Assembly (NCBI RefSeq): GCF_032191835.1
Contig: NC_083233.1
Coordinates: 51,336,001-51,400,000, forward strand
Origin: Heteronotia binoei
Lineage: Eukaryota
Length of the DNA: 64,000 bases
Direction: 5' to 3'
A program made the position numbers and the translations under genes. Below are positions 7,612 to 60,854 of the stretch, piece after piece (within the stretch, counting starts at the first letter, position 1; each line of letters begins with the position of its first letter). The notes beneath the pieces are model-generated. The model made no database searches. It had not been told where the DNA came from and was given only the letters and a program-made list of their open reading frames with translations.

Positions 7612-10104
7612 GTATGAAAAGTGCCACCACCGGGATGGTCTTCCAGGGGGACTGGGGCAGGGCCACTCATGCATTCCCTCCCAAATAAAAACATGGACAT
7701 TTGTGTGTTTAAATGTTTCCATGTTACCTTTCTCCTCAATGGAGAATCAAAACAGCTTCCCATATAAAAATACTGTGTAAAGAAACAGGAGGGGGGTGGG
7801 AAGAAACAGGGCCTCTCTCTTTCTGACTTTCCTCCCAGCTCTGTGAAAAGGGCTCTTGACCAGCAGCTCAGGCTTCTAAGAGTTTACCTGCAAGAAAGGG
7901 GTGGGCCAGAAGCTCAGCTATTCCATTTCTGTTCCATTTCCTTTCCCCTTTATTATAGTTCCCCTCATTTTTCACAAGTTGGGTTGGTTGGGAGTTGGGC
8001 CATCTTGGGGTCAGGAAAAGAGCAGGGGGGAGGCTGATGCCCCTCCTCCCCTTGGAGCCATGGTCTCAATCCAAATTGGGCCTCTACAGTACATGGGAAC
8101 TTAATTTGGAGTAGCTATAGTGTGTCTAGAGAATGTATGTCTGGTTTGGCCCTCAAAGGATTAGTGCTGGATTGCACCATCCCATAGCCACAATTCCATG
8201 CTGCCAAAGACCTGCTCTGCACACTATTAATTAACTCTGCAATAGCTTAAAATAAAATTCATTTCCCCCCCAAGGAACTGTGATAAGCAGTTTAGTAACA
8301 CACACTACCTTACCAGCATTGAACTACCCGGCCCCTTTGTGTTTATGCTTGCATATTTGTATTCATTCTTCCTGGAGAGAAAAAAAAGCTGTGTCTGCTC
8401 CCCTTTCTGAGATCTGGCATCTCACATGAAATAAAATGTAATAGAATAACAGGGCACATAGCATGCTCCTTTGGGTGAGCCCATGACAACAGGAAAATTT
8501 TGCATCCCTGCAAATTATTGTCTACAGTTTTTTAAAGCCCCATTCTCGACCCTATTCATTTGTTTTTTCATTGCCTCGTGACTTTTAAAGAAAGATCAGG
8601 TTTTCCTTTTTTTTAGTACAAAATGGCTCAACTCTTAATGATACTATTTCTGTGAAATTTTTAAAATTAATCAAATCTGCCATTGTATTTGCTCCCTTTA
8701 TGTACACACTGTACCCCCCATTTTTAAATGAATAACTCTATAATTATTAACCACTTTTTAACTACTTCATTATTTTAAAAGCTCACGAAACCATTTGCCC
8801 CACTCCCACTAAGGAGATTACTTGGGCACAAATGTGATGCACATTCAGACACGCAGCCACAACCATGTTGTTCTCTGTGGGAGGGTGCAGATTCCCAGCC
8901 GCTTCCACCAGTGCCATGACTTGCACATGCATACCTTTCAGAACAGCAGGAGAGGCTGTGTTGGAGTGATGGGTTGTGCGGGCTGCACTGGCTGCCAGTG
9001 GTGTACCGAGTTCGTTACAAAGTGCTGGTTATTAGCTTTAAAGCCCTATATGGCCGAGGACCTGCCTCCTTGAGGGACCGTCTCTCCCCATATGAACCTC
9101 AGAGAGCACTGAGGTCAGCTGGAAAGAACCAGCTGAATATCCCTGGGCCAAGGGAGGCCAGATTGAAGACTACTCGGGAACGGGCCTTCTCTATCGCAGC
9201 TCCACTACTGTGGAACCAGCTCCTGGAGGAGGTGCGGGCCCTGCGGTGTTTGGACCAATTCCGCAGGGCCTGCAAGACCTTCCTCTTTAAAATGGCTCAT
9301 TCAGTTGGGATGGCTCATTCAGTTGCTGAGCCAAGATAGATTTGCTGGAAATGTTTTAGCCACTGAATTTTATAGAAGATCTGAGTTATAGCACTATAAT
9401 GTTAATTTTAATATAAGTTGATTTAATGATGGTTTTATCTAATTGTAATTATTGTGTATTATGGTTTTACTGTGTATTGTATTTACCGTATTTGCCGGTG
9501 TATAAGACGACTGGGCGTATAAGACGACCCCCCAACATTTCCACTCAAAATATAGAGTTTGTTATATACTCGCCGTATAAGACTACCCCCTCTTCCGCAC
9601 ACCATTGTACGGCTGCAGCGCGACCGCAGCGCCTCCGGCCCGCCCCTGCATCTCCCTGTGACCGGCATTAGTGCGCAAGTGTGCATGTGCGAGCTCTGCG
9701 TAGACAAGGGGCGGGCCAAAGCGCCGCTGCTTCCCGCCGAGCAGAACGGGCCGGTCACGTCGAAAAGGCTGGCACCCTTGTCTCGCTGCTGATGCTCGCC
9801 GGAGCCACGCTGATGACCCGCCGCGGCCGCGCTGGATACCACACGATACTGGACGGTATGTAGAATGAGGTGGGTGGGCATCGGGAGGCCACTATGGGCA
9901 CCGGGCGAGCATCGGAAGGCCACTATGGGCAGCTATGTCTATCCCAACTGAAGTGCACCCGGCGTATAAGACGACCCTCCCCACTTGGAGGCATGTTTTT
10001 CAGGGCAAAAAAGTAGTCTTATATGCCAGCAAATAGGGTATATGTTGTGAGCCGCCCTGAGCCTGCCTCAGCGGGGGGTGGGGGGGCAGGATATAAATAA
10101 AAAG

Positions 10105-31027: not shown

Positions 31028-31654
31028 TTTCAAAGACAAATCCCAGCTCCATCCTCACTCCCATTTTCTAGGAGGGGTGGGGAAAGACATTAAACATGAC
31101 TTGAACATTGAAAAATCAAGAAAGTATATACGAAATGTCTCCGTCTGAGTGTTTGTTTTAATGCATCTGTTTTCAAACGCAACAAGGGAGGAAGAAAGTG
31201 CAGTTTGGAGGCTATACAAACTTTTAGGTTCTGCACTCAAGCATCCATCAGACCCAGAATACTCTTTGCAACAGTGGCCAGACAGCTGCTTTTAGGACTC
31301 CTCCCCCCGCCACTGCTGTTCAGATTGATATTATATACTGCATCTGAACATTTATCGTCACCAGATCTTATGGCACAGCTCCAGTGTCATCCTATGCAGA
31401 TTTACACCCTTCAAAGCGTATTGATTTCAAAAGGATTTAGAAGGGTGCAGCTCTGATTAGCATTGCACTCTAAAAACCTCCAAAACCCACCCTTTGTATC
31501 TAAGCTAATAGCCACACACTTCGCTCGCTTTCGTTGTCCATCAGTTAATAGGCCCCACCTTTTTAACTGCCTCCTCCAATTGGCTCCGTGAATCCTGATG
31601 CGCCCGCCCATTTTCCAAGCAGAGTCACCTCCTCCCTCTTTTTAGTGCGGCGTC

Positions 31655-31668
31655 GTTGCTATGACAGC
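31655..31668 (+). promoter_or_regulatory. RFX X-box-like motif
   Basis: GTTGCTATGACAGC versus consensus GTTGCCATGGCAAC (11/14), 30 nt upstream of the LRRC74B ATG. Confidence 0.65.
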
Positions 31669-31698
31669 CAAACAGCAGCCTCGGTCCAAGCTGCGCTG

Positions 31699-31836
31699 AT
31701 GCCGAAGCTGCTTCTATCGCCAGTGCCGGAGCAAGAGAACGACGTCGGGGGTCAGTGGCCCGGCAGCAGCAGCTCTTCTTTCGATGTCAGTCAGAGCGGC
31801 AGCAGCAGCTCCCCGGACTCTGCTGAGGGGCGAAAG
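31699..31836 (+). CDS. LRRC74B: LRRC74B putative exon 1
   Basis: MPKLLLSPVPEQENDVGG...SAEGRK, gttaga donor, phase 0 matches exon 2; lies within the promoter CpG region. Confidence 0.65.
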
Positions 31837-34800
31837 GTTAGAAAGGCCAGGCTGGAGAAAGGGATGGGGTGGCCGAGATGGCCCTGCGGAACTTTGGGAA
31901 TTGTAGTTCTTGAAAGATGAAGTGTGGCTTCCCGCAAATCTGTCCGTTCTATCCAAGCGCGTGCCTGAACATGGAGGTTCCACGGTGGGCTCTCCTGAGC
32001 AATGTAAAAGCCTGCTTTAGCATAAGAGCTACTTTGCTAGATGGAACAGGTAGGGTTGCCAAGTTTGTGCAAATACCTGGAAACTTTGGGGGTGGAGATG
32101 GGAGAGGGTGGAGTTTGGGGAGGGGAGAGACCTCAGCATGGTACAATGCCATAGAGTCCACCCTTGACACAGCCATTTTCTCCAGGGGAGTTGATCTCTG
32201 CCAGTTGGAGATCAGTTGCAAAAGCGGGAGGTCTCCAGGCCTAACCTGAAGGCTGGCAACCCTATAACTTCTGTTGATACAGCCCAAAATTGCATTTGCC
32301 TTTTTAGCCACCGCATGTTGACTCATGTTCAGCGTATGATCCACTAAGACCCCTGGATCCTTTTCGCACATACTACTGCTAAGACAAGTCTCCCCCATCC
32401 TATAACCATGGATTGGATTTTTCCTACCTAAATGCAGAACTATACATTTATCCCTGTTAAAATTCATTTTATTGGTTTTAGCCCAGTTTTCCAGCCTGTC
32501 AAGGTCATCCTGTAACCTGTTTCGGTCTTCTGAGTTTGCATCCCCTCCCAATTTAGTATCATCTGCAAATTTAATAAGCATTCCCTCTATTCCTTCATCC
32601 AAATAATTGATTAAGATGTTGAAGAAAACAGGTCCCAGGACAGATCCTTGAGGCACTCCACTTGTCACTCCTCTCCAAGAGGATGAGGAACCATTCACAA
32701 GCACTCTTTGGGTGCGATCCGTCAACCAGTTACAGATCCACCTAACGGTAACAGGATCCAAACTACATTTTACCAACTTGTCAACAAGGACAGTATGTGG
32801 AACCTTATCAAAAGCCTTATTGAAATCAAGATAAACAATGTCTACAGCATTCCCCTGATCCAGCAAGGTAATTACTTTCTCAAAAAAAGAGATCAGGTTA
32901 GTCTGACATGATTTGTTCTTGAGAAACCCATGCTGGCTCTTAGTAATCACATCCATTCTTTCTAAATGTTCCAGGACCGACTGATGATTTGTTCTAAAAC
33001 TTTTCCAGGTATAGACCAGAGGCGTCACTAGGGCAGGGCCAAGGGGGCCATTGGCCCCCCCCAGAGCATTCTCATTGGCCCCCTAGGGCTCTTTGAAGGC
33101 AGCAGGCGGCAAGCAATCACAGTCTTTATTGGCGGGAGACGCGGGGAGGCTCTTTCAAGGCAGTGGCGAAGCGAGAGAAGGCCGGGAGGGAAGAGGAAAG
33201 CGCAGCTCTCCGCAGGCAGGCATCAGAGGGCGAGCAGGCAAACCAGGGAAGGGAGGACGTTGCGAGCCAACCAGCGAGGGAAAGGAGGCTTTAGACGCGC
33301 GGGGCGCAGGAGGGAAGGGAAGGGGGCAGGCAGGCAGAGAGCGAGGGAGTCCCTCACGCAGGAGGAAAACAGGCGGCATCGGCCGCGCTCGCAGCAGCAA
33401 GAGGAGGAGCGGGTGAGGGGTAGCGCAGGAGCATTGCCGGCAGTGCGCATGAGCGCCAGTGCTGAAGACTCCGCACCGCAGGCGCTGCTGCTGGCGGCGG
33501 GGGAGGAGGGGGCAGGCGACGAGGACCCGAAGCGGGCTTCTTTCTCGCTGGTTCTCGCCAGGTGCGCTGAGCTCCCCCAGCCGCCGCTCTCGGCTAGCAA
33601 CTGGTCTTGCACAAGCCCGCGCCGCCGCCAGCGCCTTGGGAGGGACGGACTGATGGAAGAAGTAGTTTGCAGGACGAGCAGCGCCTCTCCTCAAGTTTCG
33701 GGACGGTTACCGTCCCCAAATCTTTCGGCTTCTCCAGGCGGAGGCTTCCTTTGTTCGAACGCGAGGGATTTAGCACCTCTGGGCAGCGCACGAGGACTGC
33801 TGCTCTTCCCTCCGAGTCCGGCACACTTGGCCCCAGGGTGCAACCGACTTGGCCCCAGGGTGCAACCCACGCACTTGGCCCCAGGGTGCAACCCACCCCA
33901 GTGACGCCACTGGTATAGACGTCAAGCTGATAGGTCGGTAGTTACCCGGATTGTCTTTTTTCCCCTTCTTGAAGATGGGGACAACATTTGCCCACCTCCA
34001 ATCTTCCGGCACCTCTCCTGTTCTCCAAGAATTCTTAAAAATAATAGCCAGAGGCTCAGAAATTACATCCACAAGCTCTTTTAGAACCCTTGGATGCAAT
34101 TCATCTGGCCCTGAGGACTTAGTTTCATTTAAAGAAACTAGGTGTTTATGTACTACCCCAATGCTGATCCTAGGTTGGAACTTCATACCCTCCTTATATG
34201 TTCTGTTTTTTCCATGTTGAGCAGAAGAGAAGACTGAGGAAAAGTAGGAATTGAGCAGTTCCACCCTTTCTTCATTACCCGTTACAATTTCACTTTCTTG
34301 CCCTCGCAATGGGCCTACCATGTCCTTGCTTTTTAGTTGGAGATGCTGGAGATTGAACCTGGGACCTTCTGCTTACCAAGCAGATGCTCTACCACTGAGC
34401 CACCATCCCTCCCCAGTTCTCTGATTTATTGGTGAATTATCTCCAGCATCTAGTTCTTAACAAAGACCTGCCACATGGCACTTGGAGAGAGTGAAACCAG
34501 TGGTTTTCCTCTATGTGTGCCTCCAGTGTATGGTATACTGTCTGAACACGGAGATTCCCATTTAACTATTGCAGTTGATAGCAGTCAATAGATTTCCTCC
34601 AATGACTGTATAATCTGATCCTTTTATAATCCCATTGAAACTAACAGTAATCTTCTCTTCTTGTAGCAGCAGGTTCCATATGTTAATTAATTATAGGTTA
34701 GTATGAAAAAGGATTTTCTTTTATCTGTCCTGAATTTAGTGCCAGTCAATTTCATTGAGTGACCCTGAGTTCTAATCCAATGAGAGAAGGGGAAATTTTA

Positions 34801-37800
34801 TGCATATTCCCCCTACTGTGACTTCCCCCAAATTCCCTTTAGTCAGAGGGCACTTGCTAGGAACTAACTTCCCAAGTGCTGCAGGGGCCCAGAACTATGG
34901 TGCAGGGGGGAGAGTGTCAGAGTATACAGTCATCAGACCACAGCTAGAGCTGCAATGGTTTCAGCCTTCTGTTTGTGCCATTTTTGTGGCTCTGAATGGC
35001 TCTTGGAAGGTATTATTTGTTCTGCTTAGGAATGTGCACTGTAAGGGGGAAAAATATCACAGTGGGAGTAAACATGAATAGAATTACATTGTTAAGACTG
35101 CAACCTATGTATGCATAGTCGAGAGTAAGTACCGTTAACTCAAGCCAATTTACTTAATGGGACTGACTTCTGAGCAAACATTAATGACATGGTCTGCAAA
35201 AGCCTTAAAGTATAGCAGGCTTCTTTAGCGAGCAGCTTCTGGAGCTGCAGTTCAGCAGACTGAGCAGCTATCAGATCCCTGTAGGGGTTGTTTGCAAGGG
35301 GCTGGGCCCCTCTGGAATACCAGAGATAGTCAGAAGTGCTCACTGAAATGCATCAAATGGGAACACAAACTCACACACGCTAGTCCAATCATTCTCAAAC
35401 ATTTCTAGCTCTGTGTGAAACATCCGTTTTGCTAATTTAATTTTCTTTGTTTCTTGAGAGATTTGGTAGATGAACTGCTTTGTTACATTCTTGTAGTATG
35501 TACATGAGTATGCATGTATGCATTTTTTTATTGCATGCTGTCTCAGGCTAGTCCACAGTATGTTGCTGAACCCCAGGAAGGTGAAAGCTATCATGTGGAG
35601 AAAGCAGAAGATGATTTGGAAGAGGGTGGATGTGAAGAAGAGACAAAAGAAGTTGTTGAAAGCGAGGAAGAGTGGGATACAGACCTAGAAATGGAAGGTA
35701 TTTGCAAAAGAAGTCTTGTGAGTTGAGCTGCTCATTAGTTGGACCAAGGTGATTACCCAGAGTGCTGGAAAGTAGAGGCTTTCAAAAAAGAGGTCTTCTC
35801 GTGGCAAAGCAGCAGCCTTAAATGGGTGTATGGCATGATTGGTGCATGACAGGGCTGCTGGCTGGGTGCATGGATGATTGGTGGCACTAACTGCTGGGGC
35901 CTGCTTGCCTGTCCTGACTTCCACAAAGGAGGGAGGGAGAAAGAGCAGGTGACTTACAGCTCCACTGTTAGGCTCTGCATGCACTTGGCTCACCAGGCTG
36001 TTGCAGCAGTTCCTTGCCCTCCTGGCTCTGCATGAGCCCAGGATATGACAAGGAGATGGATACAAGGCTAATGGCCTCGACACTGAAAGCCCCCTGGATT
36101 GTGTGCCAACAACCTCCAAAATCTCGATGATAGTGTACTTCTTCTTGACATGGACTTTTGTTTGTAACAGTTATATCTGGTATTGGTACGGTTACCTTGC
36201 ATGTTTTTGTTGCCTCCTGGTTCCACTAGTGAGTACTAGAATGTTCTGAACATTCTGGAGTTCTTTTTGCTGCTCTTCTTAATTTGAGTGTGGCTCATGC
36301 TTGCTGTCTATCATTTGTTTTTCTGACTACAACAGAGATGAGGGTATGTGATGTCTCGCTGTGCTTTGTGACTCTTAAGACTGTGATACCATTGGATGCA
36401 AATAGAATATCCAGATGTTAATAGGCTTGTTTTCCCAATGAATGGCTTCATGTGTTTTCTTGGGGGTCTCATCTTCTTATTTTCTTTTTCATCCTCCTCC
36501 TCTATAATTAGATTCTAAGAAGGTTTATGATCCGTCAGGAAAAGCCAAATACCTTGAGATCTGCCAAACATATGGTGTCACTCCTGTCTCTTATTTTATA
36601 CGGCACATGAAAGATTCTGAGCTGTCTCTGATGCACCATGGCCTTGGCCCAAAGGTAACAACTGGTGAAAATTCCTTTTCTTTGGCCCATCTGATGTTGC
36701 TTTCTGTCCATACAGGAACTTGTGATGGTATTTTGGAGGATTAATTAGCAGCTGTTTAATCAGATGGATGGCAAAGTGGGTCAGCTGGGAAATCCTATTT
36801 CAGTTCTTGCCTCTTCCATAACCTTTCTGAGTGGCCAGAGGCAAACTTCTACTTCATCGGTATCCCTCTCCTTCTATCTGCAGTATAACAGTAGTGCTGT
36901 TGGCTTTGTCTTACAGGGTCATTGTAAGAATTTTTAAAATAATGCATGTGAAGTATTGTGCACAGTCTGAAATGTGGCAGAAATGATCATATAGTGATGC
37001 AACTCAGATGCTGTGTGCTAAAGGAGATATTAAAATGCTAACTGAAGCTCTAACAGTGCCATCCCAAGCAAAGCTACATCCTTCTGTGGCCATTGACTCC
37101 AGTGGACTCAGAAAACTATAACTCTGCCTAGGATGAACAAAATAGGAGTCGATTGCACCTTTAAGACCAAGTCACTTAGTTTGAGCTAACTTTATAAAAT
37201 TATTTGTATGAATTGTAATGATAAAATTATTGATAAGAAACAGTATTGAAGACAAAAATGTATAATATTGTGTCATACGTTAACATATGTAAACAAATAA
37301 CCAATCCCTTAACTTTTTATAGCTGGTCCATGAATTGAAATTTAGCAAATTTAAGTAAGGTATTCAGCGACTAAGAAGGAAAAAGAAATCAAAACTGACT
37401 GTTTAAAAAAATGTGCATTGTTTCCCCATCCAAAGCTGTATAATCCCCAGAGGAAACAGCATCTATTTGATTTCAGGTTTTGGCCTGAGTCAGTAGTGGT
37501 GCTTTCAGCTGACTGCTGATGGGCGGGAGCAGTGGGGAATTAATGTCTTTGTTGGAAACGACTGGTGCTTGCACGGGAGAGCTTTCCTTTTCAGGTTGCA
37601 TCCATGAAGTTCAGAGCTTCAGTTTTTCTCTAAGAATAGTTGGGCTGGATCCAGCCAGCTTCCTCACAGAACCTTGCCTTACTTATTACAGCCTCTATCA
37701 CAAATGGCTTTTGTTGCTATGGGCTGCCCAATCCCTAGCATAGCTTTTTTAGTGGCCTCCCTTTTGCACCAGCAGAGAAGCTGACTGAATCCAATCCATG

Positions 37801-40800
37801 GGAGGTATAGAGACGGCTCCATTCTGTAGACTTCACCAGCTCTTTTGCTCATTCAAAAAGTATCTCTTACCTCTCAGGAGGATCATTCTGAGTGTCTCTC
37901 CCAGTTTGAAAATTTTCCTGCTAGTTGTTTGTGTATTTGTTTGTTATTCCCTTTTTCCTCCAAAGAGTTGAGGATTACATATGTAGTCCCTCCACAGCTC
38001 CCCACTCCCCATTTGATCTTTGTAACAATCCTGCAAGGTAGGCTGGGCTGAGAGAGAGAGTGACTGGCCCAATATCAGCCACCCATTGAGTTCCAGGGTG
38101 TAGTTGGAATTTGAATCTTGGTCTCTGCAATCCTAATTTTACACTCTTGGCACCATGGTGATGCTCTCAAGGCCAAAGTAGTGATTCTTTCCTGAGCAGC
38201 TTTTCTCTGTTGTGAAGGTAAATCAGAGACACTGTTGATTGTAACTGCACAGATGTTTAAAGGATTGCAAATTCTTCCAGTTAGCAGATGAGGAGGTAAA
38301 GCTGTTCTGGTCTGTACCACTTCAGGCTGCAGAGTGGGGTTCACAGGACTGAATGCCCTTCGCACAAAATCAGGGCTTGAATTCAGCAAGAGCTCACAGG
38401 ACCGCAGCTCCTGAACCTCCAGCCAGGGTCTGCATGCAGTGGGGAGTTCTCTCCACACTGCACACAGATCCTGGGGCATATGAGATATGCTACTGAGCTC
38501 CTGCACCTTTTTTCCCTACAAAATTATCCCTGCACAAAATTATTCCTTTCACATTGGAAGCCAGTAAGGAAGAAGCATTCCAGTGTAGGCTTTACCTGGG
38601 CATGCTAGTTTTCTCTGTTAGGACTGAGATGGGAGGATATTCCATTATGAGAACCCACCTGTATTGTCTGAAGTGGTATAGCCCAGGTGTGGGTTTACCA
38701 CCAGCAAGCCTAGACTGTTTCATCTAACATTGAACAGTATTTGCTCCTAGTTCGCTCATGTCTGCCATGTTCCCTGCTTTAGGGGGCCAAAGCTGTGGCT
38801 CTTTCTCTTGCAAGCAATACATCTGTTGTGAAGTTAAATTTAAGCGACAATTGGCTAAATGGAGATGGGACAGCTGCAGTGGCAGAGATGTTAAAGGAAA
38901 ATTGCTACATTTCAGGTATGGTCTTAATTCCATGGGTTTGAGAAGTGCTTTAGGATAGCAAAATATTAGCCACGTGGCACACACTCGAACAGATACTGAG
39001 ATGCTTTTGCATGACTTGTGGGTCCCTCTCAGCTAAGTTTCTAGAGATCTGGCTTCACAATGAAGTCTGAGCAGGCAAACATGAACAAGGCTAAGATAGG
39101 TTTTATTCTGTGTTCCATATACTCTGTGTTTTTTTGGGGGGGAGGGCTTGTGCTTGCTGTCAAAAATCTAAGAGGTACAGGAATGAGAGTAATTGGTGTA
39201 TGTGATTGAGGGACAGATGGTCTAGGAGATCAGTCACTTTGGGAGGAGGGCTCTTCAGCTGGCTTCCAATTCTGGCTAGTCAAAAAATTAACAGAACACT
39301 GTGGAAAACTAAGGAAACAAGCCTGGGTCTAGAGGAGGAGATTTTCTTTTTGGTAGGACTAAAAGCTGGTGTTCTTCTCCCACAGATGTAGATTTATCAG
39401 AGAACAGGCTGGGGGTGAAAGGGGCCAAGGCCCTGTCTGCTATGCTTCAGGAAAATGCCATGCTAGTGACCCTGAAACTCTCAGGAAATGAATTAAATGA
39501 CCAAGCGGCCAAATATCTAGCTGATGCGCTCTTGACCAACAATAAACTGGAATCTCTTGATCTAAGCCATAATGCCTTCGGGGAGTCAGCTGGTAAGAGT
39601 ATTTCTCTGACAATGGCAGGTACCTGTTGCATTAAGGGGATGGGCAGTATTTAGAAGAAGGATTTAAAGGGGGGGCGGAAGCAGTTTATGAGACAGTGAC
39701 TGTAGATGCTTCATCCGAGGCAGAGCCAGGAGCCAGGAAAATTGGAATGATGCCACCTGAGTTAGCCATCAACTGCCCCCAACTGTATTAAGAGCATTTG
39801 AAGCACTAACTGTTCTGGGTGCAAATTACCTCGGAGTGCTGTCATAACTTTAAAAACTGAAAAAAGCAATACATTTACTCTCTTATGGTTCTCGTTTATT
39901 TCTAGTGTTTGGGGTGGGGGAGGCAAGAAAATATTTCAGTGGATCATGTTGTTCCATGCATAAACCAAAGATATTTTTGTTAATTAGGAGCTTAATTAAG
40001 TTCATTTGAAAGCTAGCAACTACCTTTTTCTGCCTGAAGAAGACTTCTATGCAACTTGAAGGTTTGCCTACCCTTGCACAAACAGAAGGGAATCAAAAAA
40101 AGGGGCATGGCTTAACCTGTTTTGTTTATTTAGGGCCATGTGCTAACATTTGTCAATATTCTCTTCAGAATGCAGGTGCTGTGGTCATCTCTTTCTCCTG
40201 CACTGGATCAGCTTCATTTCTTTCCTCCTACTGTTCAGTGGCCACATCGTGCTTGTGCCTTGTGCTCCAGGGTCAGGGTCCACCTGGTCTCTCCATTTCA
40301 TGTGCTTGGCTTCTTTCATCTTACGTTTCCCTCGCTCGCTGAACAACCTTGCTGCCGGGAGACCCTCCTTTGCTCTGTGCACAGAAGGAGTCTCACCTGG
40401 CTCCTAATCAGGTGCCCCTTTCCATCTTACCTTGAAATGAGGACACAGTGAGTCAGTGGAAACCAGTGAAAGAGAGAGAGCTTGCCCAGAAAAGAGGGAG
40501 GAACAGCTCAGTGCAGGAGCAAGTTTAGTGCTAGAAGAAATGAGAGAAAAGAGGAAAAGCAAAGGTAGGACTCAGTAAAGAAAATGATCTTCTAGGTATT
40601 TCTGTTGAAATTGGGCGGAACAGCCCAGGAAAGGGAACCTACCACCATCACCGCCACCCTTTTGCCACATGCACCCTTTAAAATCATTTTAGTCCACGCC
40701 ACAATTGTGACAGTATTGCTGCTTTCTACAAACCCAAGCTTCTTGAGCTTCCAGTTCTGCACAATCAGTTGGCTTCAAGAATTTGTCCCACTGGAGCCAC

Positions 40801-53290: not shown

Positions 53291-56200
53291 CTAAGGCAAA
53301 GAGGAACAAGAGTAAAAGCAAATCCAAACATATCACCATAGGTCAAAATCACACCACGATCCCTTTGTGCAGGCCCAGAACTAAATCATTTATGATGAGG
53401 AGCATAAAGATTGCAGGGAGAGCATAAGTTAATTTGAAACAGAAAAATCCCTGTAAATCCAATATTATTACAAATTATTAATTCGAATTTAATTTGATTT
53501 TAAGTACCAGGTGTCCAGTTGCTCCTTGGGGTAGGGTTGCCAACTCTGGGATTGAAAATTCCTGGAGCTTTGGGGAGGATGGAGTTAGAGGAAAGGAATT
53601 TAATAATTTTGTAATGATATGTCCTGTGATATCACATCCAGATCAAAGGTCAGTTCCTGCATCTCCCCTTCCTGTGAGATTCCTCTCACCAAAACTCAAC
53701 TTTTATATATTTTCCATTACATATCACGCCCCCCTAGTGTTCCCTCGAAGCTGAGTTAGTGTGAACTCTCTCGCAGTTTTTTAGCCTCCAGCTCACGATT
53801 TTTCCTTAACTCAGTAAAGGTGGCCCCAGAGGAAACTAATTTATGCAGCAGACAAATCGCTCACTCACAACTTTAATGCTAGTAGTTTATGAAGTAGAAT
53901 TTTTGCTCACAAGACTCCAAAGCTTCAATGGACCTTTGCTTTCTCCCTTCCCCGCCCCCCCCATCTTGCATCACTTGTTGGGGTTTGTATGTATGTGTTC
54001 TGTATGTCACACTAACCTTTTAGGAAGGGCTGTAGCTCAGAAGAACTTGACATACAGAAAACCCCAGGTTCAATCCCTTCTTAACTCAAAAGCTTCTGTT
54101 TGTTCGATATTGTGTCAAACCCCCTGCAACCTTTTTCTGCTTTGAGAAAAGTCCTTCATACAAGCCAGATCCTGCAGGGTGACTTCCAAGCAATGATGAA
54201 AAAACAAACCAATCAGGCGCCTGGCTGAGTGCTTCCAAGCACTGCCATCTCCCACCTCATCCCAATCCCCTGGCCTAGTTTATACTTTGGGCCATTTCCT
54301 AACTGCAGATAGGGAAAGTTCCCTCAAAATAGTGTAGCTGTCAAGTCAGATTTTCTTCCCAGTGCTCTTGTTCTCATTGCCACTGTTAAGGGGGAGAAAC
54401 AAACAAATAAAAAAGAAACAATCGAGAAAAAGTTATGCAACCAGCCAGAGAAGAATGGGTTCAGTCAATAAAGGGTTAACTGCCCAGCAGCACTGCTCTC
54501 TTCAGCTTCCCTTCCTCCTTATTTGCAGGGCAATTGCTAAAAGGCAGGTTGCACACCTCCACTGGTATTACCATGAAAGGGCTGGAGGATTTTCTTTAAA
54601 ATGAAAGCTGGGCATTCAGAGAGGAGGGGGCTGGCATATCTCTAGGAGAGCTATTCCCCTACCTGCTCTCGTTACTGCAGGCTAAGCAATGTGGCAAATA
54701 AATAAACATGTAGATATTTGTGAGTTTCCTGCACTGTGCAGGGGGTTGGACTAGATGACCTGGAGGTCCCTTCCAACTCTGATTCTATGTAAAACAGTAC
54801 AATGGGATTCCACTAGCTAGAAGGAAGCAGGAAGAGCAGCATATCAGCTCTAATGAGAGACAAAAGTAAACTACCTAGCTGACCAGGAAGTGTTTGTCAA
54901 TCATTTACTCAGATCCCAGGCTGAGACAAACTCACTGAGTTAGCATACAGAAAAAAGGCATACTGCCCAAGTGATTAAATGGCAGTCTCTCCCCGCAAGC
55001 CTGGGCTCTAGCAGCAAAGGACAAACTCTGCAGCTTGTCAGCTTAAAAGGGCACCCAGACCAGGGCTGGCTCTGCCACTAGGCAAAGCAGGTGATTGCCT
55101 AGGGTGCCAGCCTTCTGGGGGTGCCGAATTAGGTGCCCCCCATGTGACTTGGTGATGTTATCAGTGAGGGGGGGCAGAAGTTAGCCTTGCCTAGGGTGCC
55201 GGACAGTCTCGGGCCAGTCCTGACCTGGACAAAATACTATACTTCACCAAACAGGTGGCTATTGTGGAAAGTGTGTCAAGCAGGGCTACCAAGAGCCACC
55301 AAGGGCCCCCTGACCAAAGATTCCACCTGCCCCCCCAAAAAATATGACCTTGATCCAAATCATAACAAAACAAATCACTTGGCTGGCAGTTACCATGTAA
55401 CTATACTAATAAAAGAATCCTCATGTCCATCTGTCAATTTGTGGCAGGCAGGGCTTTTTTTGTAGAAAAAGCCCAGCAGAACTCATTTGCATATTAGGCC
55501 ACACCCCTGACACCAAGCCAGCTGGAACTGCATTCCTGTTTTAAAAAAGCCCTGGTAGCAGGCATAACTCATCAGGAATCTCAAAATTGGCCACCAGCTC
55601 CAGGATGATCATGGGAGTTCCAAGGCCAAAAATGAAAGGAATTGGAACATCCTGGCCAAGTTATCTTTGCAATGGAAGCCAAACAAAGNNNNNNNNNNNN
55701 NNNNNNNNNNNNNNNNNNNNNNNNNNNNNNNNNNNNNNNNNNNNNNNNNNNNNNNNNNNNNNNNNNNNNNNNNNNNNNNNNNNNNNNNNNNNNNNNNNNN
55801 NNNNNNNNNNNNNNNNNNNNNNNNNNNCCTCCCCGCCGGAGCAGGCTCAGGGCGGCTAACAGGACATGGTATATACCATGATCAGTTATACAATTCATAA
55901 AAGATACAGTTAAAATACAATTTACATAAAAATTATAAAACCATAGTAAATTAAAGGCAGATTAACATTCTGTTATCATGCATGTAAAGAGTGGAGGGAT
56001 GTGGAGGGAAGCTTTGATAGATTATAGGGAAATTATTAAGGGTGTGACAAACAGGATTGAACTCCAAAGGGAAGGCTTTTAAAGGGACTGCACACCTTTT
56101 AAATGCATTAGAAAATAATGAAGGATAGAGGCACCTTTTTGAGGGACTCATAGAATCAGACCCCCTGATCCAATATTTTTGAAACTTGGGGGGTTCTTTT

Positions 56201-59200
56201 GAGGAGAGGCACCAGATGCTGTACTGAACATTTGGTGCCTCTATCTCAAAAAACAGCACCCCCTCCCGAGCCCCAGGTATCCGCGGATTGATTCTCCATT
56301 ATATCCTATGGGAAGCATTATCCATAGAGTACAATAGAGTACCAAGCAGACATTTCCTTCCCCACCCCTGCTTTTTGATGACTCTGAAGTAGGGGGAGAA
56401 CCTCTAAACAAGGGCATCCCCTGCCCCCAATTTGGGATTGGTAATCCTAAATACTGAATATCTAAAAACATGCGATGAATATTTGATATTTGTCAACAAT
56501 TTGATATCTGAAGATTTCACTGCAGGGCATGGTTAGTAGTTGGCTATATTTTACATGTTCTGATATTGTTTTGAAAAAATATAGGCAATTTTAACTATTG
56601 ATCAAGCAAAATATCTGAATTCTTGATTTTGATGTCCAGTTTCAATTCTGGAATTGCTGGCATAGAGTATTAGACAATAATCTGAGAGACACAGGTTTGA
56701 ATCCCAACTGTGGAGGTAGGTTACCAACCTCCCAGTGGGGCCTGGAGTTCTACTGAAATTGAGGCTGATCTCTGTAATAGAGATTATTTCCTTTTGAGGA
56801 AATAGCAGCTTCAGAGTACAGGCTCTGTGGCATTACAGCCCCACTCTGCTCCCTCCCCAAGAACTTCCCCCAGAACTTCAGGAATTTTCCATGCCAGAGC
56901 TGACAGCCCTAGTATCTGCCATGGAAGCTCATTGGCCATCCATGGTCTAATCACTCTCTCTCAGCCTAATCTACCTCATAGGGTTGTTGTTTGTGTGATA
57001 AAATAGAAGGGGCTTGTAAGCCACTGTTGGTCTCCATTGGGGAGGAAATGGGTGCATAAATACATAAATAAATCCATATTTTTTAGGTTAAAATTTAAGT
57101 TGTTAAATGTGAAAATTCATCCATTGCATTTCAAGCTCTACTGTGGACATGACCATCATCATTTCAATATTCTTGTTCACAACTGAGGAGAGGAATGAAA
57201 ACAAGCTAGTCCACATTGCATTTGGTGGGTTGCCTGTGCACCCTGCCTTCTTTTCTAGAGGGGTGAGAGAAAAGAATTTCCCCCTTCCAAAGCCTCAGCA
57301 GAGTGTCCAGTGAGCTGCCTCACTCCCCTCCCCCCAAACTCCACCCAGTCCCCTCTCAACATCCATTTTCAGAAGCCAGTCCCCAACTCACCTGCAAGCA
57401 GCCAGACAGAGAAGCGCAGCCAAGTCATGTAGTTGAGTTTCAGCATGAGGTAGATGTTAAGGAGGATGCTGAGGGCTGGAGTCAGTGGTACCAGGGGGAG
57501 CTAAAAAGGAAAGGAGACCAAGATGAGATGGACAGGCTGCAACAATTCAGGGGCTTTTCAACAGGGTTTGGCTGAAAGAAGATAGAGGCCCCCGATTATT
57601 CTGAATACCTTCTCTGGAAATGCAACATTAACATTTCCCCCAGCAGAGTGGTTTTTGATGTCTGAGGGCTACTCCCCACTGCAATAGGAAACATATCTCA
57701 TTTGCTGAAGGAAAAACCTTGACAGCTGGAACACAACCAGTGAAGAAAGAAGTCAGTGGCAAGGAGTTAGTGAGGGGGCAGGCTTTCTAAGGTCATGCTA
57801 TTTCTTTCAAGGGAACTGATGCTGCTCTGCAGACTCCAAAACTAGCATCTAATTCACTGCTTACTTACTAATGAACATGGAGGCCTACTATTTCCCATGA
57901 TCAAGTTCTAGCAAAATCATGGCGTGAGACTCTGCACTCAAACAGAGCTTGTGGGAAAGCTGTCCTGTGTCTGCCTCACCAGAAACAGACTTCATGACAA
58001 AAACACATATTTCCTACAGTGGTAGCTTGAATTTGCTGCCTCAATAGGAAAAGAGAATGGAAAGGGTGGGGGTGGGGGGAACCGCAGAGTATTTAGGACA
58101 GCAGATATCTTGCAAATCCCTTATTAGGCTTTCTCCCAGTTACCTGGAATGTCTGGCTTTTCTTTTGTTGCTCGTGAACCGCAATGAGAACCAAGCTGAC
58201 GACAAAGGCCAGGCTGAACAGTATGATCAGCAAGCTGTAGCTCCAGGTGGGCAGGTGAAGCTGGTTCTTCCCAAACACCAGGATGGAGCACAAGCAGATA
58301 GCAGACACCATGAGGATGATAACAGCCACTGTGACCACCTCTCCTGGGTAGAAATCACTGAGGAAGTCCAAGTAAGGATCAAAAATGGCCTTAAGCTGTC
58401 CTGGTTCCCGCTGACTTTTAGCCTTTTCCTTGCCTACCAAGTTCAGCTTGTCAGAGAAAGATTCATACTCTTTTGGTTCACTGGCACCAATGGTCTCTGC
58501 AGATGTTGGTGGTGCATTCTCACTTTCTGAAGGTGGGTTTGGTGCTTGGGACTTGGCCCGCTGGAAGCGCAGAACAATGACGCTGGCTGCTACAAAGGTG
58601 TAGGCCAAGAGGGTGCCAATGGACAGGAACTGGACTAGGGCTTCCAAGTCAAAGATGAGGGCCAGCAAAGACATGAGAGTGCCAAACACCACAATGGCCA
58701 CCACAGGAACCTGTGTGTGTGGGTGGACACGTGAGAACACCTGGAAAAAGAGCCCATCCTCTGCCATGGCATAGACAATCCGTGGCAGAGAGAAGAGGTT
58801 GCTGAGGAGAACTGTGTTCATTGCTGGAAAGAAACAGGAGATGCACATGTTTAGAAGGACCACCCACTCACCCTTCCCTCTTCTGAGCTGCCTGAGATGA
58901 AAAGGACAAACTGTACAGTACTGTGACAGAACATAAGGGCTGCATGCTGGATCAGACTACACAGAGAAGTCCTGCACCCTCTCCCTCACGAATGGCTCAT
59001 AACAGCTTGGCCTTGTTCAGTCTTGGTGCTGAACACCCATCCGTTGGCAAGATAACTGTTGGGTCAAAGGCTTTTGTAATGTGTAAACAAAAAGGTGATA
59101 GCCTGTATTCTCTCTACGCTACAATGAGTGAGGAAGAGGAGAGGAAGAACAGCCCACAGCTTGCAGGATGGCAACAAGGGAGGGGAGATTCTGGCCTCCG

Positions 59201-60256
59201 GTGACAGTGCAGGTGATGAGAAGCTAATATAGATTTTGGGAAAGCCCAAGCCCTGGGCCTCAGCCCATACTCACCACAAATGGATCCAGCAGCCACAATG
59301 AAGCCAGCCCAAGAGTAACCCCTTTTGTAAAAGGCATCAGCTAGGGCGGAGTCAGGGTCCAAGGAGTGCCAAGGCACCATCAGTGTCAACACCATGGAAA
59401 CCAAGATGTAGGCCCCTGTGGCAAGGCCCAGTGAGATTGCAATAGCTCTGGGAACAGCTTTCTGAGGGTTCCTGGCCTCCTCGCTGGATGCAGCTATAAC
59501 ATCAAAGCCCACAAAGGCATAAAAACATGTAGCTGTCCCCGCCATGATGCCTGAGATGCCAAAGGGGGCAAATCCCCCTTCCGCTGCCCCCCAGTTTTGG
59601 GGCTTAGCCAGAATGAATCCCATCACAAGGATGAAGAGGATGACTCCCATACTGATAGCAGAGAAGACATGGTTGAGCCAAGATGAGACTCGAGCCCCAA
59701 AGGAGATGAAGGCTGTTGCTATGAGCAGTATGCCTGATGCCAAGAAGTCTGGGTAATGTGCCAGGAATGGGACACTCCAGGTGCCAACATGGGTCTCAGT
59801 GAAATTCTTGATTCTGTGATCAAAGATGGAGTCCAGGTAGCCGCTCCATGCTCTGGCGACAGCTGCCCCACCTATCATGTACTCAAGAATGACATTCCAG
59901 CCAATCAGGAAGGCCCAAATCTCACCCACAGAGATGTATGTGAACATGTATGCAGAGCCAGTCTTGGGTACATGAGCGCCAAACTCTGCATAGCAGAGAG
60001 CAGCGAGCAGTGAGGCAAAGGCAGCAATGATAAAGGAGATAACGATGGCAGGCCCTGCCGTCTCCTTGGCAACAGTACCAGTGAGCACATACAAGCCAGA
60101 GCCCACCATACCCCCAATGCCTAGCAGTGTCAAGTCAAAAGTGGTCAGGCATCGGTTGAAGGCAGTCTCCATCATGTCATCCTCCAGAGTCTTCACTCGA
60201 TTAAGCTTCTGGCAGAAGCGGGTCAGCTCTGCTGAGCGAGGCAGGCGGCTCACCAT
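53094..60256 (-). CDS. SLC7A4: Cationic amino acid transporter 4 (CAT-4), 655 aa; join 59275-60256, 58144-58823, 57392-57500, 53094-53290
   Basis: [80 protein letters not shown] and [15 protein letters not shown] match SLC7A4; GT-AG sites and phases consistent; 1968 nt. Confidence 0.97.
55061..55222. mobile_element. hAT-type MITE
   Basis: TIRs cagggctggc / gccagtcctg; internal gcctagggtgcc repeats; degenerate 8-bp TSD acccagac / acctggac. Confidence 0.7.
55449..55554. mobile_element. Small hAT MITE (same family as 20381-20497)
   Basis: TIRs cagggctttttt / aaaaaagccctg; TSD gtggcagg / gtagcagg. Confidence 0.85.
55689..55827. other. Assembly gap (139 N)
   Basis: Run of N characters in the last intron of SLC7A4. 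Confidence 0.99.
57392..57500 (-). CDS. SLC7A4: SLC7A4 third coding exon
   Basis: [36 protein letters not shown]. Confidence 0.95.
58144..58823 (-). CDS. SLC7A4: SLC7A4 second coding exon
   Basis: AMNTVLLS...KKSQTFQ; gtaact donor. Confidence 0.96.
59275..60256 (-). CDS. SLC7A4: SLC7A4 first coding exon (exon starts at 60358 including 5' UTR)
   Basis: ttgcag acceptor at 60359-60361, aagATGg start, gtgagt donor. Confidence 0.96.
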
Positions 60257-60854
60257 CTTGGTAGGAAGGTGGTGGTGGTGGTGGTGGGGTGGGGTCAGCC
60301 TGTCACCACCAACAGTAGGAAGGCAGAGCACTCTCTCCTTAGTCTTCGGCTTGAAAGTCTGCAAGGAAAAGAATAGTCACATTAATGGTCTACTTGAACT
60401 GATCCAGTTGTACCAGCATATAAACAGTGATTTGGGGCAAAAATACTGGTCAGACACCAATGAAGCAGCAAAGAAATGGAGAGAGGTGACCCTCAGCCTC
60501 CACTGAATACCTGGAAATTCAACCTGTGCTTGAGGGAAATGAACAAAACGTTCTGCTGAAGGTGCCTGTAGAACAGGTTCAGCTAAAAAGTGCTGCTAGC
60601 TGAATAGCTGTCCCTTATTTTATAGGAAGATTTTGTGAGCATGTGCTGTGACACTGGGGTGGGGCAAACGTGGAGGCATTTCTGTTCACTTAAGGTTTCA
60701 CATTTACCAGGAGCTCATGCCAGGACCCTGTTCCAATATCAAGGGTCTGTCTGGGCTTTAGTGCAATCAAGTTAAGGAATGCCTCTGAGTATACACAGAG
60801 AGGATGATTTCACTGGTCCCTCTTCAATCCAAAGCAGTGTTGACGGAAAATGCT

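Follow-up and report, generated by a model that had tools for sequence, protein, structure and literature searches.

At positions 33017-33912 of the window, by which we mean the whole 64-kb stretch of DNA analysed, an 896-bp hAT-style insertion combines ends typical of a transposon family with an apparently foreign, low-copy, CpG-island-like interior. It is probably a Pack-type non-autonomous hAT, a kind already known in animals (Tan et al. 2021), and an ordinary but clean example of that kind. The account of its origin that we favour, with a little more confidence than doubt, is that the interior of a non-autonomous hAT was replaced by a host CpG-island 5' end and that the product then transposed into a CR1 fragment.

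Insertion site and element ends

As shown in Table 1, the element is flanked by two copies of gtatagac and bounded by terminal inverted repeats (TIRs), which begin CAGAG on the left and CAGTG on the right. The TIRs of hAT elements begin YARNG, with which both ends comply, and the flanking octamer fits not only the Ac-type pattern of target-site duplication (TSD) but also the Buster-type pattern nnnTAnnn. When the 64-kb window was searched for an exact 8-bp TSD combined with a 13-bp TIR containing at most one mismatch, this was the one pair found, and 20 shuffles yielded none, so that we rejected a chance origin of the combination. The TIR length falls within the 10-25 bp described for hAT elements, and gTatagAc conforms to the hAT consensus nTnnnnAn, of the Ac type (PMC8961557).

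Inside the left terminus lies the palindrome gggggccattggccccc (33043-33059, arms 8+1+8). The right terminus comprises the outer 89 bp and is, like the left, multi-copy in reads, and subterminal repeats are present near both element ends. Of the six + strand copies of the motif TTGGCCCC in the 64-kb window, five lie inside the terminal 66 and 89 bp, where one antisense TGGCCCC is also found. No trace of a hAT transposase, BED or hAT-dimerisation domain was detected in any frame of the element (Pfam, eight ORFs), and no cognate hAT transposase (BED + DDE + hAT dimerisation domain) was found within the 64-kb window. The earlier note had described a perfect 8-bp TSD, TIRs, a left palindrome, three right subterminal 21-mers and a lack of transposase similarity, and our direct reading of the sequence bears out this description, with the three tandem units measuring 22-26 nt each.

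The insertion interrupts a CR1-type reverse-transcriptase (RT) fragment. After deletion of the element together with one TSD copy, the minus strand reads ...NYRPISLTSIPGKVLEQII..., a CR1-type RT motif that continues over the junction. Because this deletion rejoins the CR1 motif, gtatagac is a true target-site duplication, and the restoration of CR1 upon removal of the element, as had been claimed, was recovered in the form of an uninterrupted RT motif. CR1 paralogues in four sequencing runs span 33007 to 33912 without the element, with nine letters common to both sides. We considered these joints as a possible empty allele and rejected them, because the bridging contig has 14 mismatches in 314 nt and is thus a paralogous CR1 copy.

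The CR1 fragment is adjoined by a very high-copy SINE-like repeat, whose tRNA-like head at 34338-34410 on the minus strand was recognised by ARAGORN as tRNA-Thr (GGT). This head showed the top depth of the examined stretch in all four runs, and its summed word depth in the DNA contigs of organism C (X6) was 3.97 million.

Table 1. Features of the element and of the interrupted CR1 fragment, in window coordinates.
Feature	Position	Strand	Details
Interrupted CR1-type reverse-transcriptase fragment, downstream (3') part	31949-33016	-	RVT_1, 1e-24
TSD, left copy, gtatagac	33009-33016	.	fits nTnnnnAn
Left family-type terminus	33017-33082	+	66 bp; palindrome and two CATTGGCCCCC; multi-copy; CpG o/e 0.13
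Left TIR, CAGAGGCGTCACT	33017-33029	+	13 bp
Low-copy CpG-island-like cargo	33083-33823	+	741 bp; GC 0.653, 64 CpG, o/e 0.83
Purine-rich ATG-free tract, putative promoter and 5' UTR	33083-33448	+	three 16-mers GGCTCTTTSAAGGCAG about 58 bp apart
NRF1-like TGCGCATGAGCG	33444-33455	+	11/12 to YGCGCAYGCGCR
Candidate first coding exon	33449-33561	+	first ATG, 37 codons, CAG/GTGCGC; inferred
Putative start of donor gene's intron 1	33562-33823	+	CpG o/e 0.91; inferred
Three tandem subterminal repeats (CACTTGGCCCCAGGGTGCAACC...)	33824 to ~33899	+	22-26 nt; likely transposase-binding sites
Right TIR, CAGTGGCGTCACT (minus-strand reading)	33900-33912	-	12/13 vs left TIR
TSD, right copy, gtatagac	33913-33920	.	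exact 8/8 repeat
Interrupted CR1 fragment, upstream (5') part	33921-34321	-	ends ...NYRPISLTSIP at insertion site

Composition and layout of the interior

The cargo differs sharply in CpG content from its surroundings, including the ends of the element that carries it. It holds 64 of the 561 CpGs of the window, whose overall CpG o/e is 0.17, and across cargo sub-blocks this ratio is even (0.74-0.91). The element ends are 68% GC yet CpG-poor (o/e 0.13 left, 0.30 right), so that CpG o/e shifts abruptly from 0.13 to 0.83 and then to 0.30 at the borders 33082/33083 and ~33823/33824, which are those defined by the reads. CpG islands extend over at least 200 bp with a GC content of at least 0.5 and an o/e of at least 0.6; the cargo passes these thresholds, and every 500-bp window over 33001-33601 has a GC content of at least 0.55 and an o/e of at least 0.6. 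Such a contrast would be expected of ends with a history as methylated repeat DNA around a middle recently copied from an unmethylated island.

In the first 366 nt of the cargo the + strand contains no ATG, against 3.7 expected (P=0.02), and there is a surplus of G and A before the first ATG. The NRF1-like motif was scored against the sequence YGCGCAYGCGCR, which we take to be the NRF1 consensus. The sole donor-like site in the cargo is the CAG/GTGCGC at 33561/33562, at the end of the candidate 37-codon exon; this candidate has a weak Kozak context, and no homologue of it was found in protein searches. Read as a whole, the layout suggests a promoter, 5' UTR, first coding exon, splice donor and intron start. 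A minus-strand AATAAA at 33127-33132 was rejected as a signal, being compatible with chance.

Each compositional feature reported for the interior in the earlier note was found again: the roughly 740 bp of GC- and CpG-rich sequence (33090-33820; measured GC 0.653 and CpG o/e 0.85 vs 0.17 for the window), the NRF1-like TGCGCATGAGCG, the gccgccgcc runs, and the 5' UTR-like tracts, which correspond to the purine-rich, ATG-free first part of the cargo.

Read evidence for the family and the cargo

Besides X6, the reads included the RNA raw reads X21 of organism A, with 6% of the run read, and X1, an RNA-library run of the same organism. A contig identical to the window over 158 nt makes organism A the likely source species. 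Coverage gaps in aligned contigs were given no evidential weight.

The element's 66-bp and 89-bp ends belong to a many-copy family. The depth of X21 was ~46 per strand in the left terminal bins and ~10 in the right ones, with zero over 33313-33817 in the 6% of the run; the terminal bins of X1 reached 395 and 114, and those of X6 reached 13,584 and 1,907, with the X6 interior empty except for a low-complexity purine tract. Furthermore, at exactly 33082, 92 X21 RNA reads part from the window sequence and follow a common continuation (agreement 0.95), from which it follows that most family members have another interior. A few X21 reads run past 33082 into 33083-33230, and because of these the family sequence may reach ~140 bp into what we call the cargo. 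The family continuation also matches 33554-33562 over 9 nt, where ~0.1 such matches would be expected by chance on a rough estimate; this match was not retained.

Two X1 contigs cover much of the element at depth 4-9, one at 33223-33381 (1 mismatch in 159 nt) and one at 33396-33899 (2 mismatches in 482 nt), the latter reaching from the cargo into the right terminus. Because they are near-identical to the window, the same cargo with the right terminus exists in another sample, as an allele or a second copy. The second of these contigs, apart from its 2 mismatches, lacks the 22-nt subterminal unit 33825-33846, a difference that may be allelic or mark a sister copy. We rejected the X1 coverage gap at 33111-33222 as a transcription start, since gaps prove nothing. 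The idea that the interior is rRNA spacer or some other structured RNA was likewise discarded, there being no Rfam match and no high depth in RNA or DNA runs.

Searches for a donor of the cargo found none. A blastn search of the rest of the 64-kb window (about 31-33 kb either side) found neither a donor nor a second element copy, and no second copy of the same cargo with a different TSD was seen in the reads or the window. A phmmer search with a 214-aa ORF against 1.84 billion representatives gave one weak low-complexity match. Nothing was returned by a word search that covered proteins of 118-375 aa and nothing relevant by a PDB search, and an exact look-up of five ATG-started ORFs retrieved none of them. 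Exact-pattern scans of metagenome contigs (with the terminus and then the cargo) and of viral contigs (with the terminus) also gave no match. It is the composition and layout of the cargo that point to an origin in the host.

The host locus

The element lies between two features that plausibly belong to one + strand gene. Upstream, the CpG-island-like block 31560-31900 (GC 0.59, o/e 0.70) contains an ATG-started open frame at ~31703-31838, which ends AAG/GTTAGA and encodes 45 aa without a Pfam domain; this block, 1.2 kb upstream of the element, may be where the + strand LRR gene has its true promoter and exon 1. Downstream, the exon 39313-39651 (+) encodes a ribonuclease-inhibitor-type LRR (LRR_6, 1.9e-12), to which, among solved structures, axonemal RI-like LRR proteins are closest. 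An intronic site in an LRRC74-like gene is plausible because of this exon-1-like ORF upstream and LRR exon downstream.

Two long open frames of 256 and 416 aa in 58093-60364 (-) match AA_permease_2 (5.9e-11 and 2.7e-34) and probably represent large exons of a transporter gene of the SLC7 type. SLC7A4 presumably adjoins LRRC74B in human, and with a permease gene in the window the name LRRC74B is plausible. The placement of the element in LRRC74B intron 1, as first proposed, therefore stands as regards a plausible intronic position in an LRRC74-like gene, with LRRC74B as a candidate name.

Origin of the element and alternative readings

According to the origin that we favour, ~741 bp of low-copy CpG-island DNA, unmethylated by its appearance, would have taken the place of the family's usual interior. 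The most likely route is template switching while a double-strand break or gap in a family member was being repaired. A hAT transposase acting in trans would have bound the TIRs and the TTGGCCCC-containing subterminal sites, and the chimera would subsequently have been cut and pasted into the CR1 RT fragment, creating the 8-bp duplication; of these steps, the insertion itself is shown by the sequence. The landing site would be between the CpG-rich exon-1-like block and the LRR exon of the + strand gene. The element is young, because its TSD is perfect and its CpG content undecayed. The earlier note had proposed a recent transposition of a captured host promoter, of which we retain a non-autonomous hAT, an interior that is not the family's usual one and a CpG-island/5' UTR layout; the donor was not found, and arrival by transposition is the likelier of two accounts, the other being filling of the element in place. 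The proposal would be contradicted if many copies shared one interior that stemmed from an autonomous hAT; tested indirectly through the reads, this was not seen.

Filling in place is the main rival and, in our judgement, unlikely. It supposes that an ordinary family member inserted first, leaving the TSD, and that a later internal break was repaired with copied DNA, so that the cargo itself never transposed. Most single-copy animal Pack-TIRs arise in this way (Tan et al., PMC8277862), and the lack of a second copy of the cargo with another TSD agrees with it. However, for 57% of unique, essentially single-copy Pack-TIRs the parent is found no more than 15 kb away, and in most of these cases no more than 5 kb (PMC8277862). 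Here the donor is absent within about 31-33 kb on each side, which makes filling in place less probable; the perfect TSD and undecayed CpGs additionally point to a single recent event. The second rival, that the interior is the family's own, we regard as very unlikely. The element would then descend by internal deletion from a rare autonomous hAT, of which it would keep the promoter, the 5' UTR and part of the 3' region. The need of hAT elements for up to ~150-220 bp of each end (PMC10368747), the few X21 reads that pass 33082 to ~33230 and the failure to find a donor are in line with this. Yet a transposase, BED or hAT-dimerisation domain left its mark in none of the frames, there were no protein relatives among 1.84 billion representatives beyond the one weak match, the cargo is absent or rare where the ends reach depths of thousands, and methylated transposon sequence should be CpG-depleted like the ends (0.13-0.30), not at an o/e of 0.83.

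Two further readings concern what the cargo may do. That the island has a function of its own here, serving the LRR gene from within an intron as a new alternative promoter or enhancer, seems to us rather improbable. The cargo is CpG-island-like with undecayed CpGs, its purine/GC skew and putative exon share their orientation with the host gene, and contigs of the RNA library X1 cover 33223-33899 at depth 4-9 and 34424-34827 not at all. However, youth alone accounts for the CpG content, X1 may contain DNA or pre-mRNA (a depth of 4.7 was also seen at 34929-35000) and its contigs give neither strand nor start, and 33313-33817 received zero reads in 6% of X21. We give similarly little credence to the broadest reading, in which the copying of CpG-island promoters together with the adjoining first exons is systematic in a young, many-copy hAT family of the gecko, and in which this island is unmethylated and starts transcripts in LRR intron 1. 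If a genome-wide count bore it out, the family would be a vertebrate system for the capture and scattering of promoters by DNA transposons, known at scale so far mainly from plants. A genome-wide bias of capture toward CpG islands, possibly the more interesting matter, is beyond the reach of one element.

Comparison with known systems

A survey of 100 animal genomes found 370 Pack-TIRs, among which hAT was the commonest superfamily (208/370; Tan et al. 2021, PMC8277862). What the present element offers is a clean and young case in which the borders of the cargo are sharply defined. Its closest counterpart in the comparison is Pack-hAT-N8_XT of Xenopus tropicalis, a hAT with 291 bp of CAPSL 5' UTR at three loci (PMC8277862). 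Both are non-autonomous hATs with intact ends, an 8-bp TSD and an interior of a few hundred bp that comes, here apparently, from the 5' end of a gene. For the frog element the parent gene is known and there are three copies, each with a TSD of its own, whereas here one locus was seen, and the present cargo is larger (741 bp) and resembles a promoter with a first exon and intron start.

Rice Pack-MULEs are likewise TIR elements without a transposase, and they show a preference for duplicating GC-rich pieces of genes and increase the GC content of the regions where they land; they differ in belonging to the Mutator superfamily of plants, with an 8-11-bp TSD, long TIRs and thousands of copies (PMC5861414), in contrast to the single element here. 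Maize Ds elements of the Ac/Ds system resemble it as heterogeneous non-autonomous hATs that have TIRs and some subterminal repeats in common, vary in their interiors and are mobilised in trans, but inside they mostly consist of deleted versions of Ac or of short stretches unrelated to it, without CpG islands, and their autonomous partner is known (PMC3260210). The ends of Hermes follow the same plan as those described here, with a short TIR and then a palindromic subterminal repeat pair at one end and same-sense repeats at the other, and the Hermes BED domains bind the subterminal repeats, including the palindromic pair beside the left TIR (PMC10368747). The Hermes motif is AAGT/AAGC and differs from the TTGGCCCC-type motif of this element, to which binding may be supposed by analogy.

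Other features of the window

An N run occupies 55689-55827. A second TIR-bounded element, without similarity to the hAT element, was observed at 9486-10038, with repeated GTATAAGACGACC near both ends. Its interior is also CpG-rich, and the 500-bp windows over 9501-10100 have a GC content of 0.60-0.61 and a CpG o/e of 0.85-0.98.
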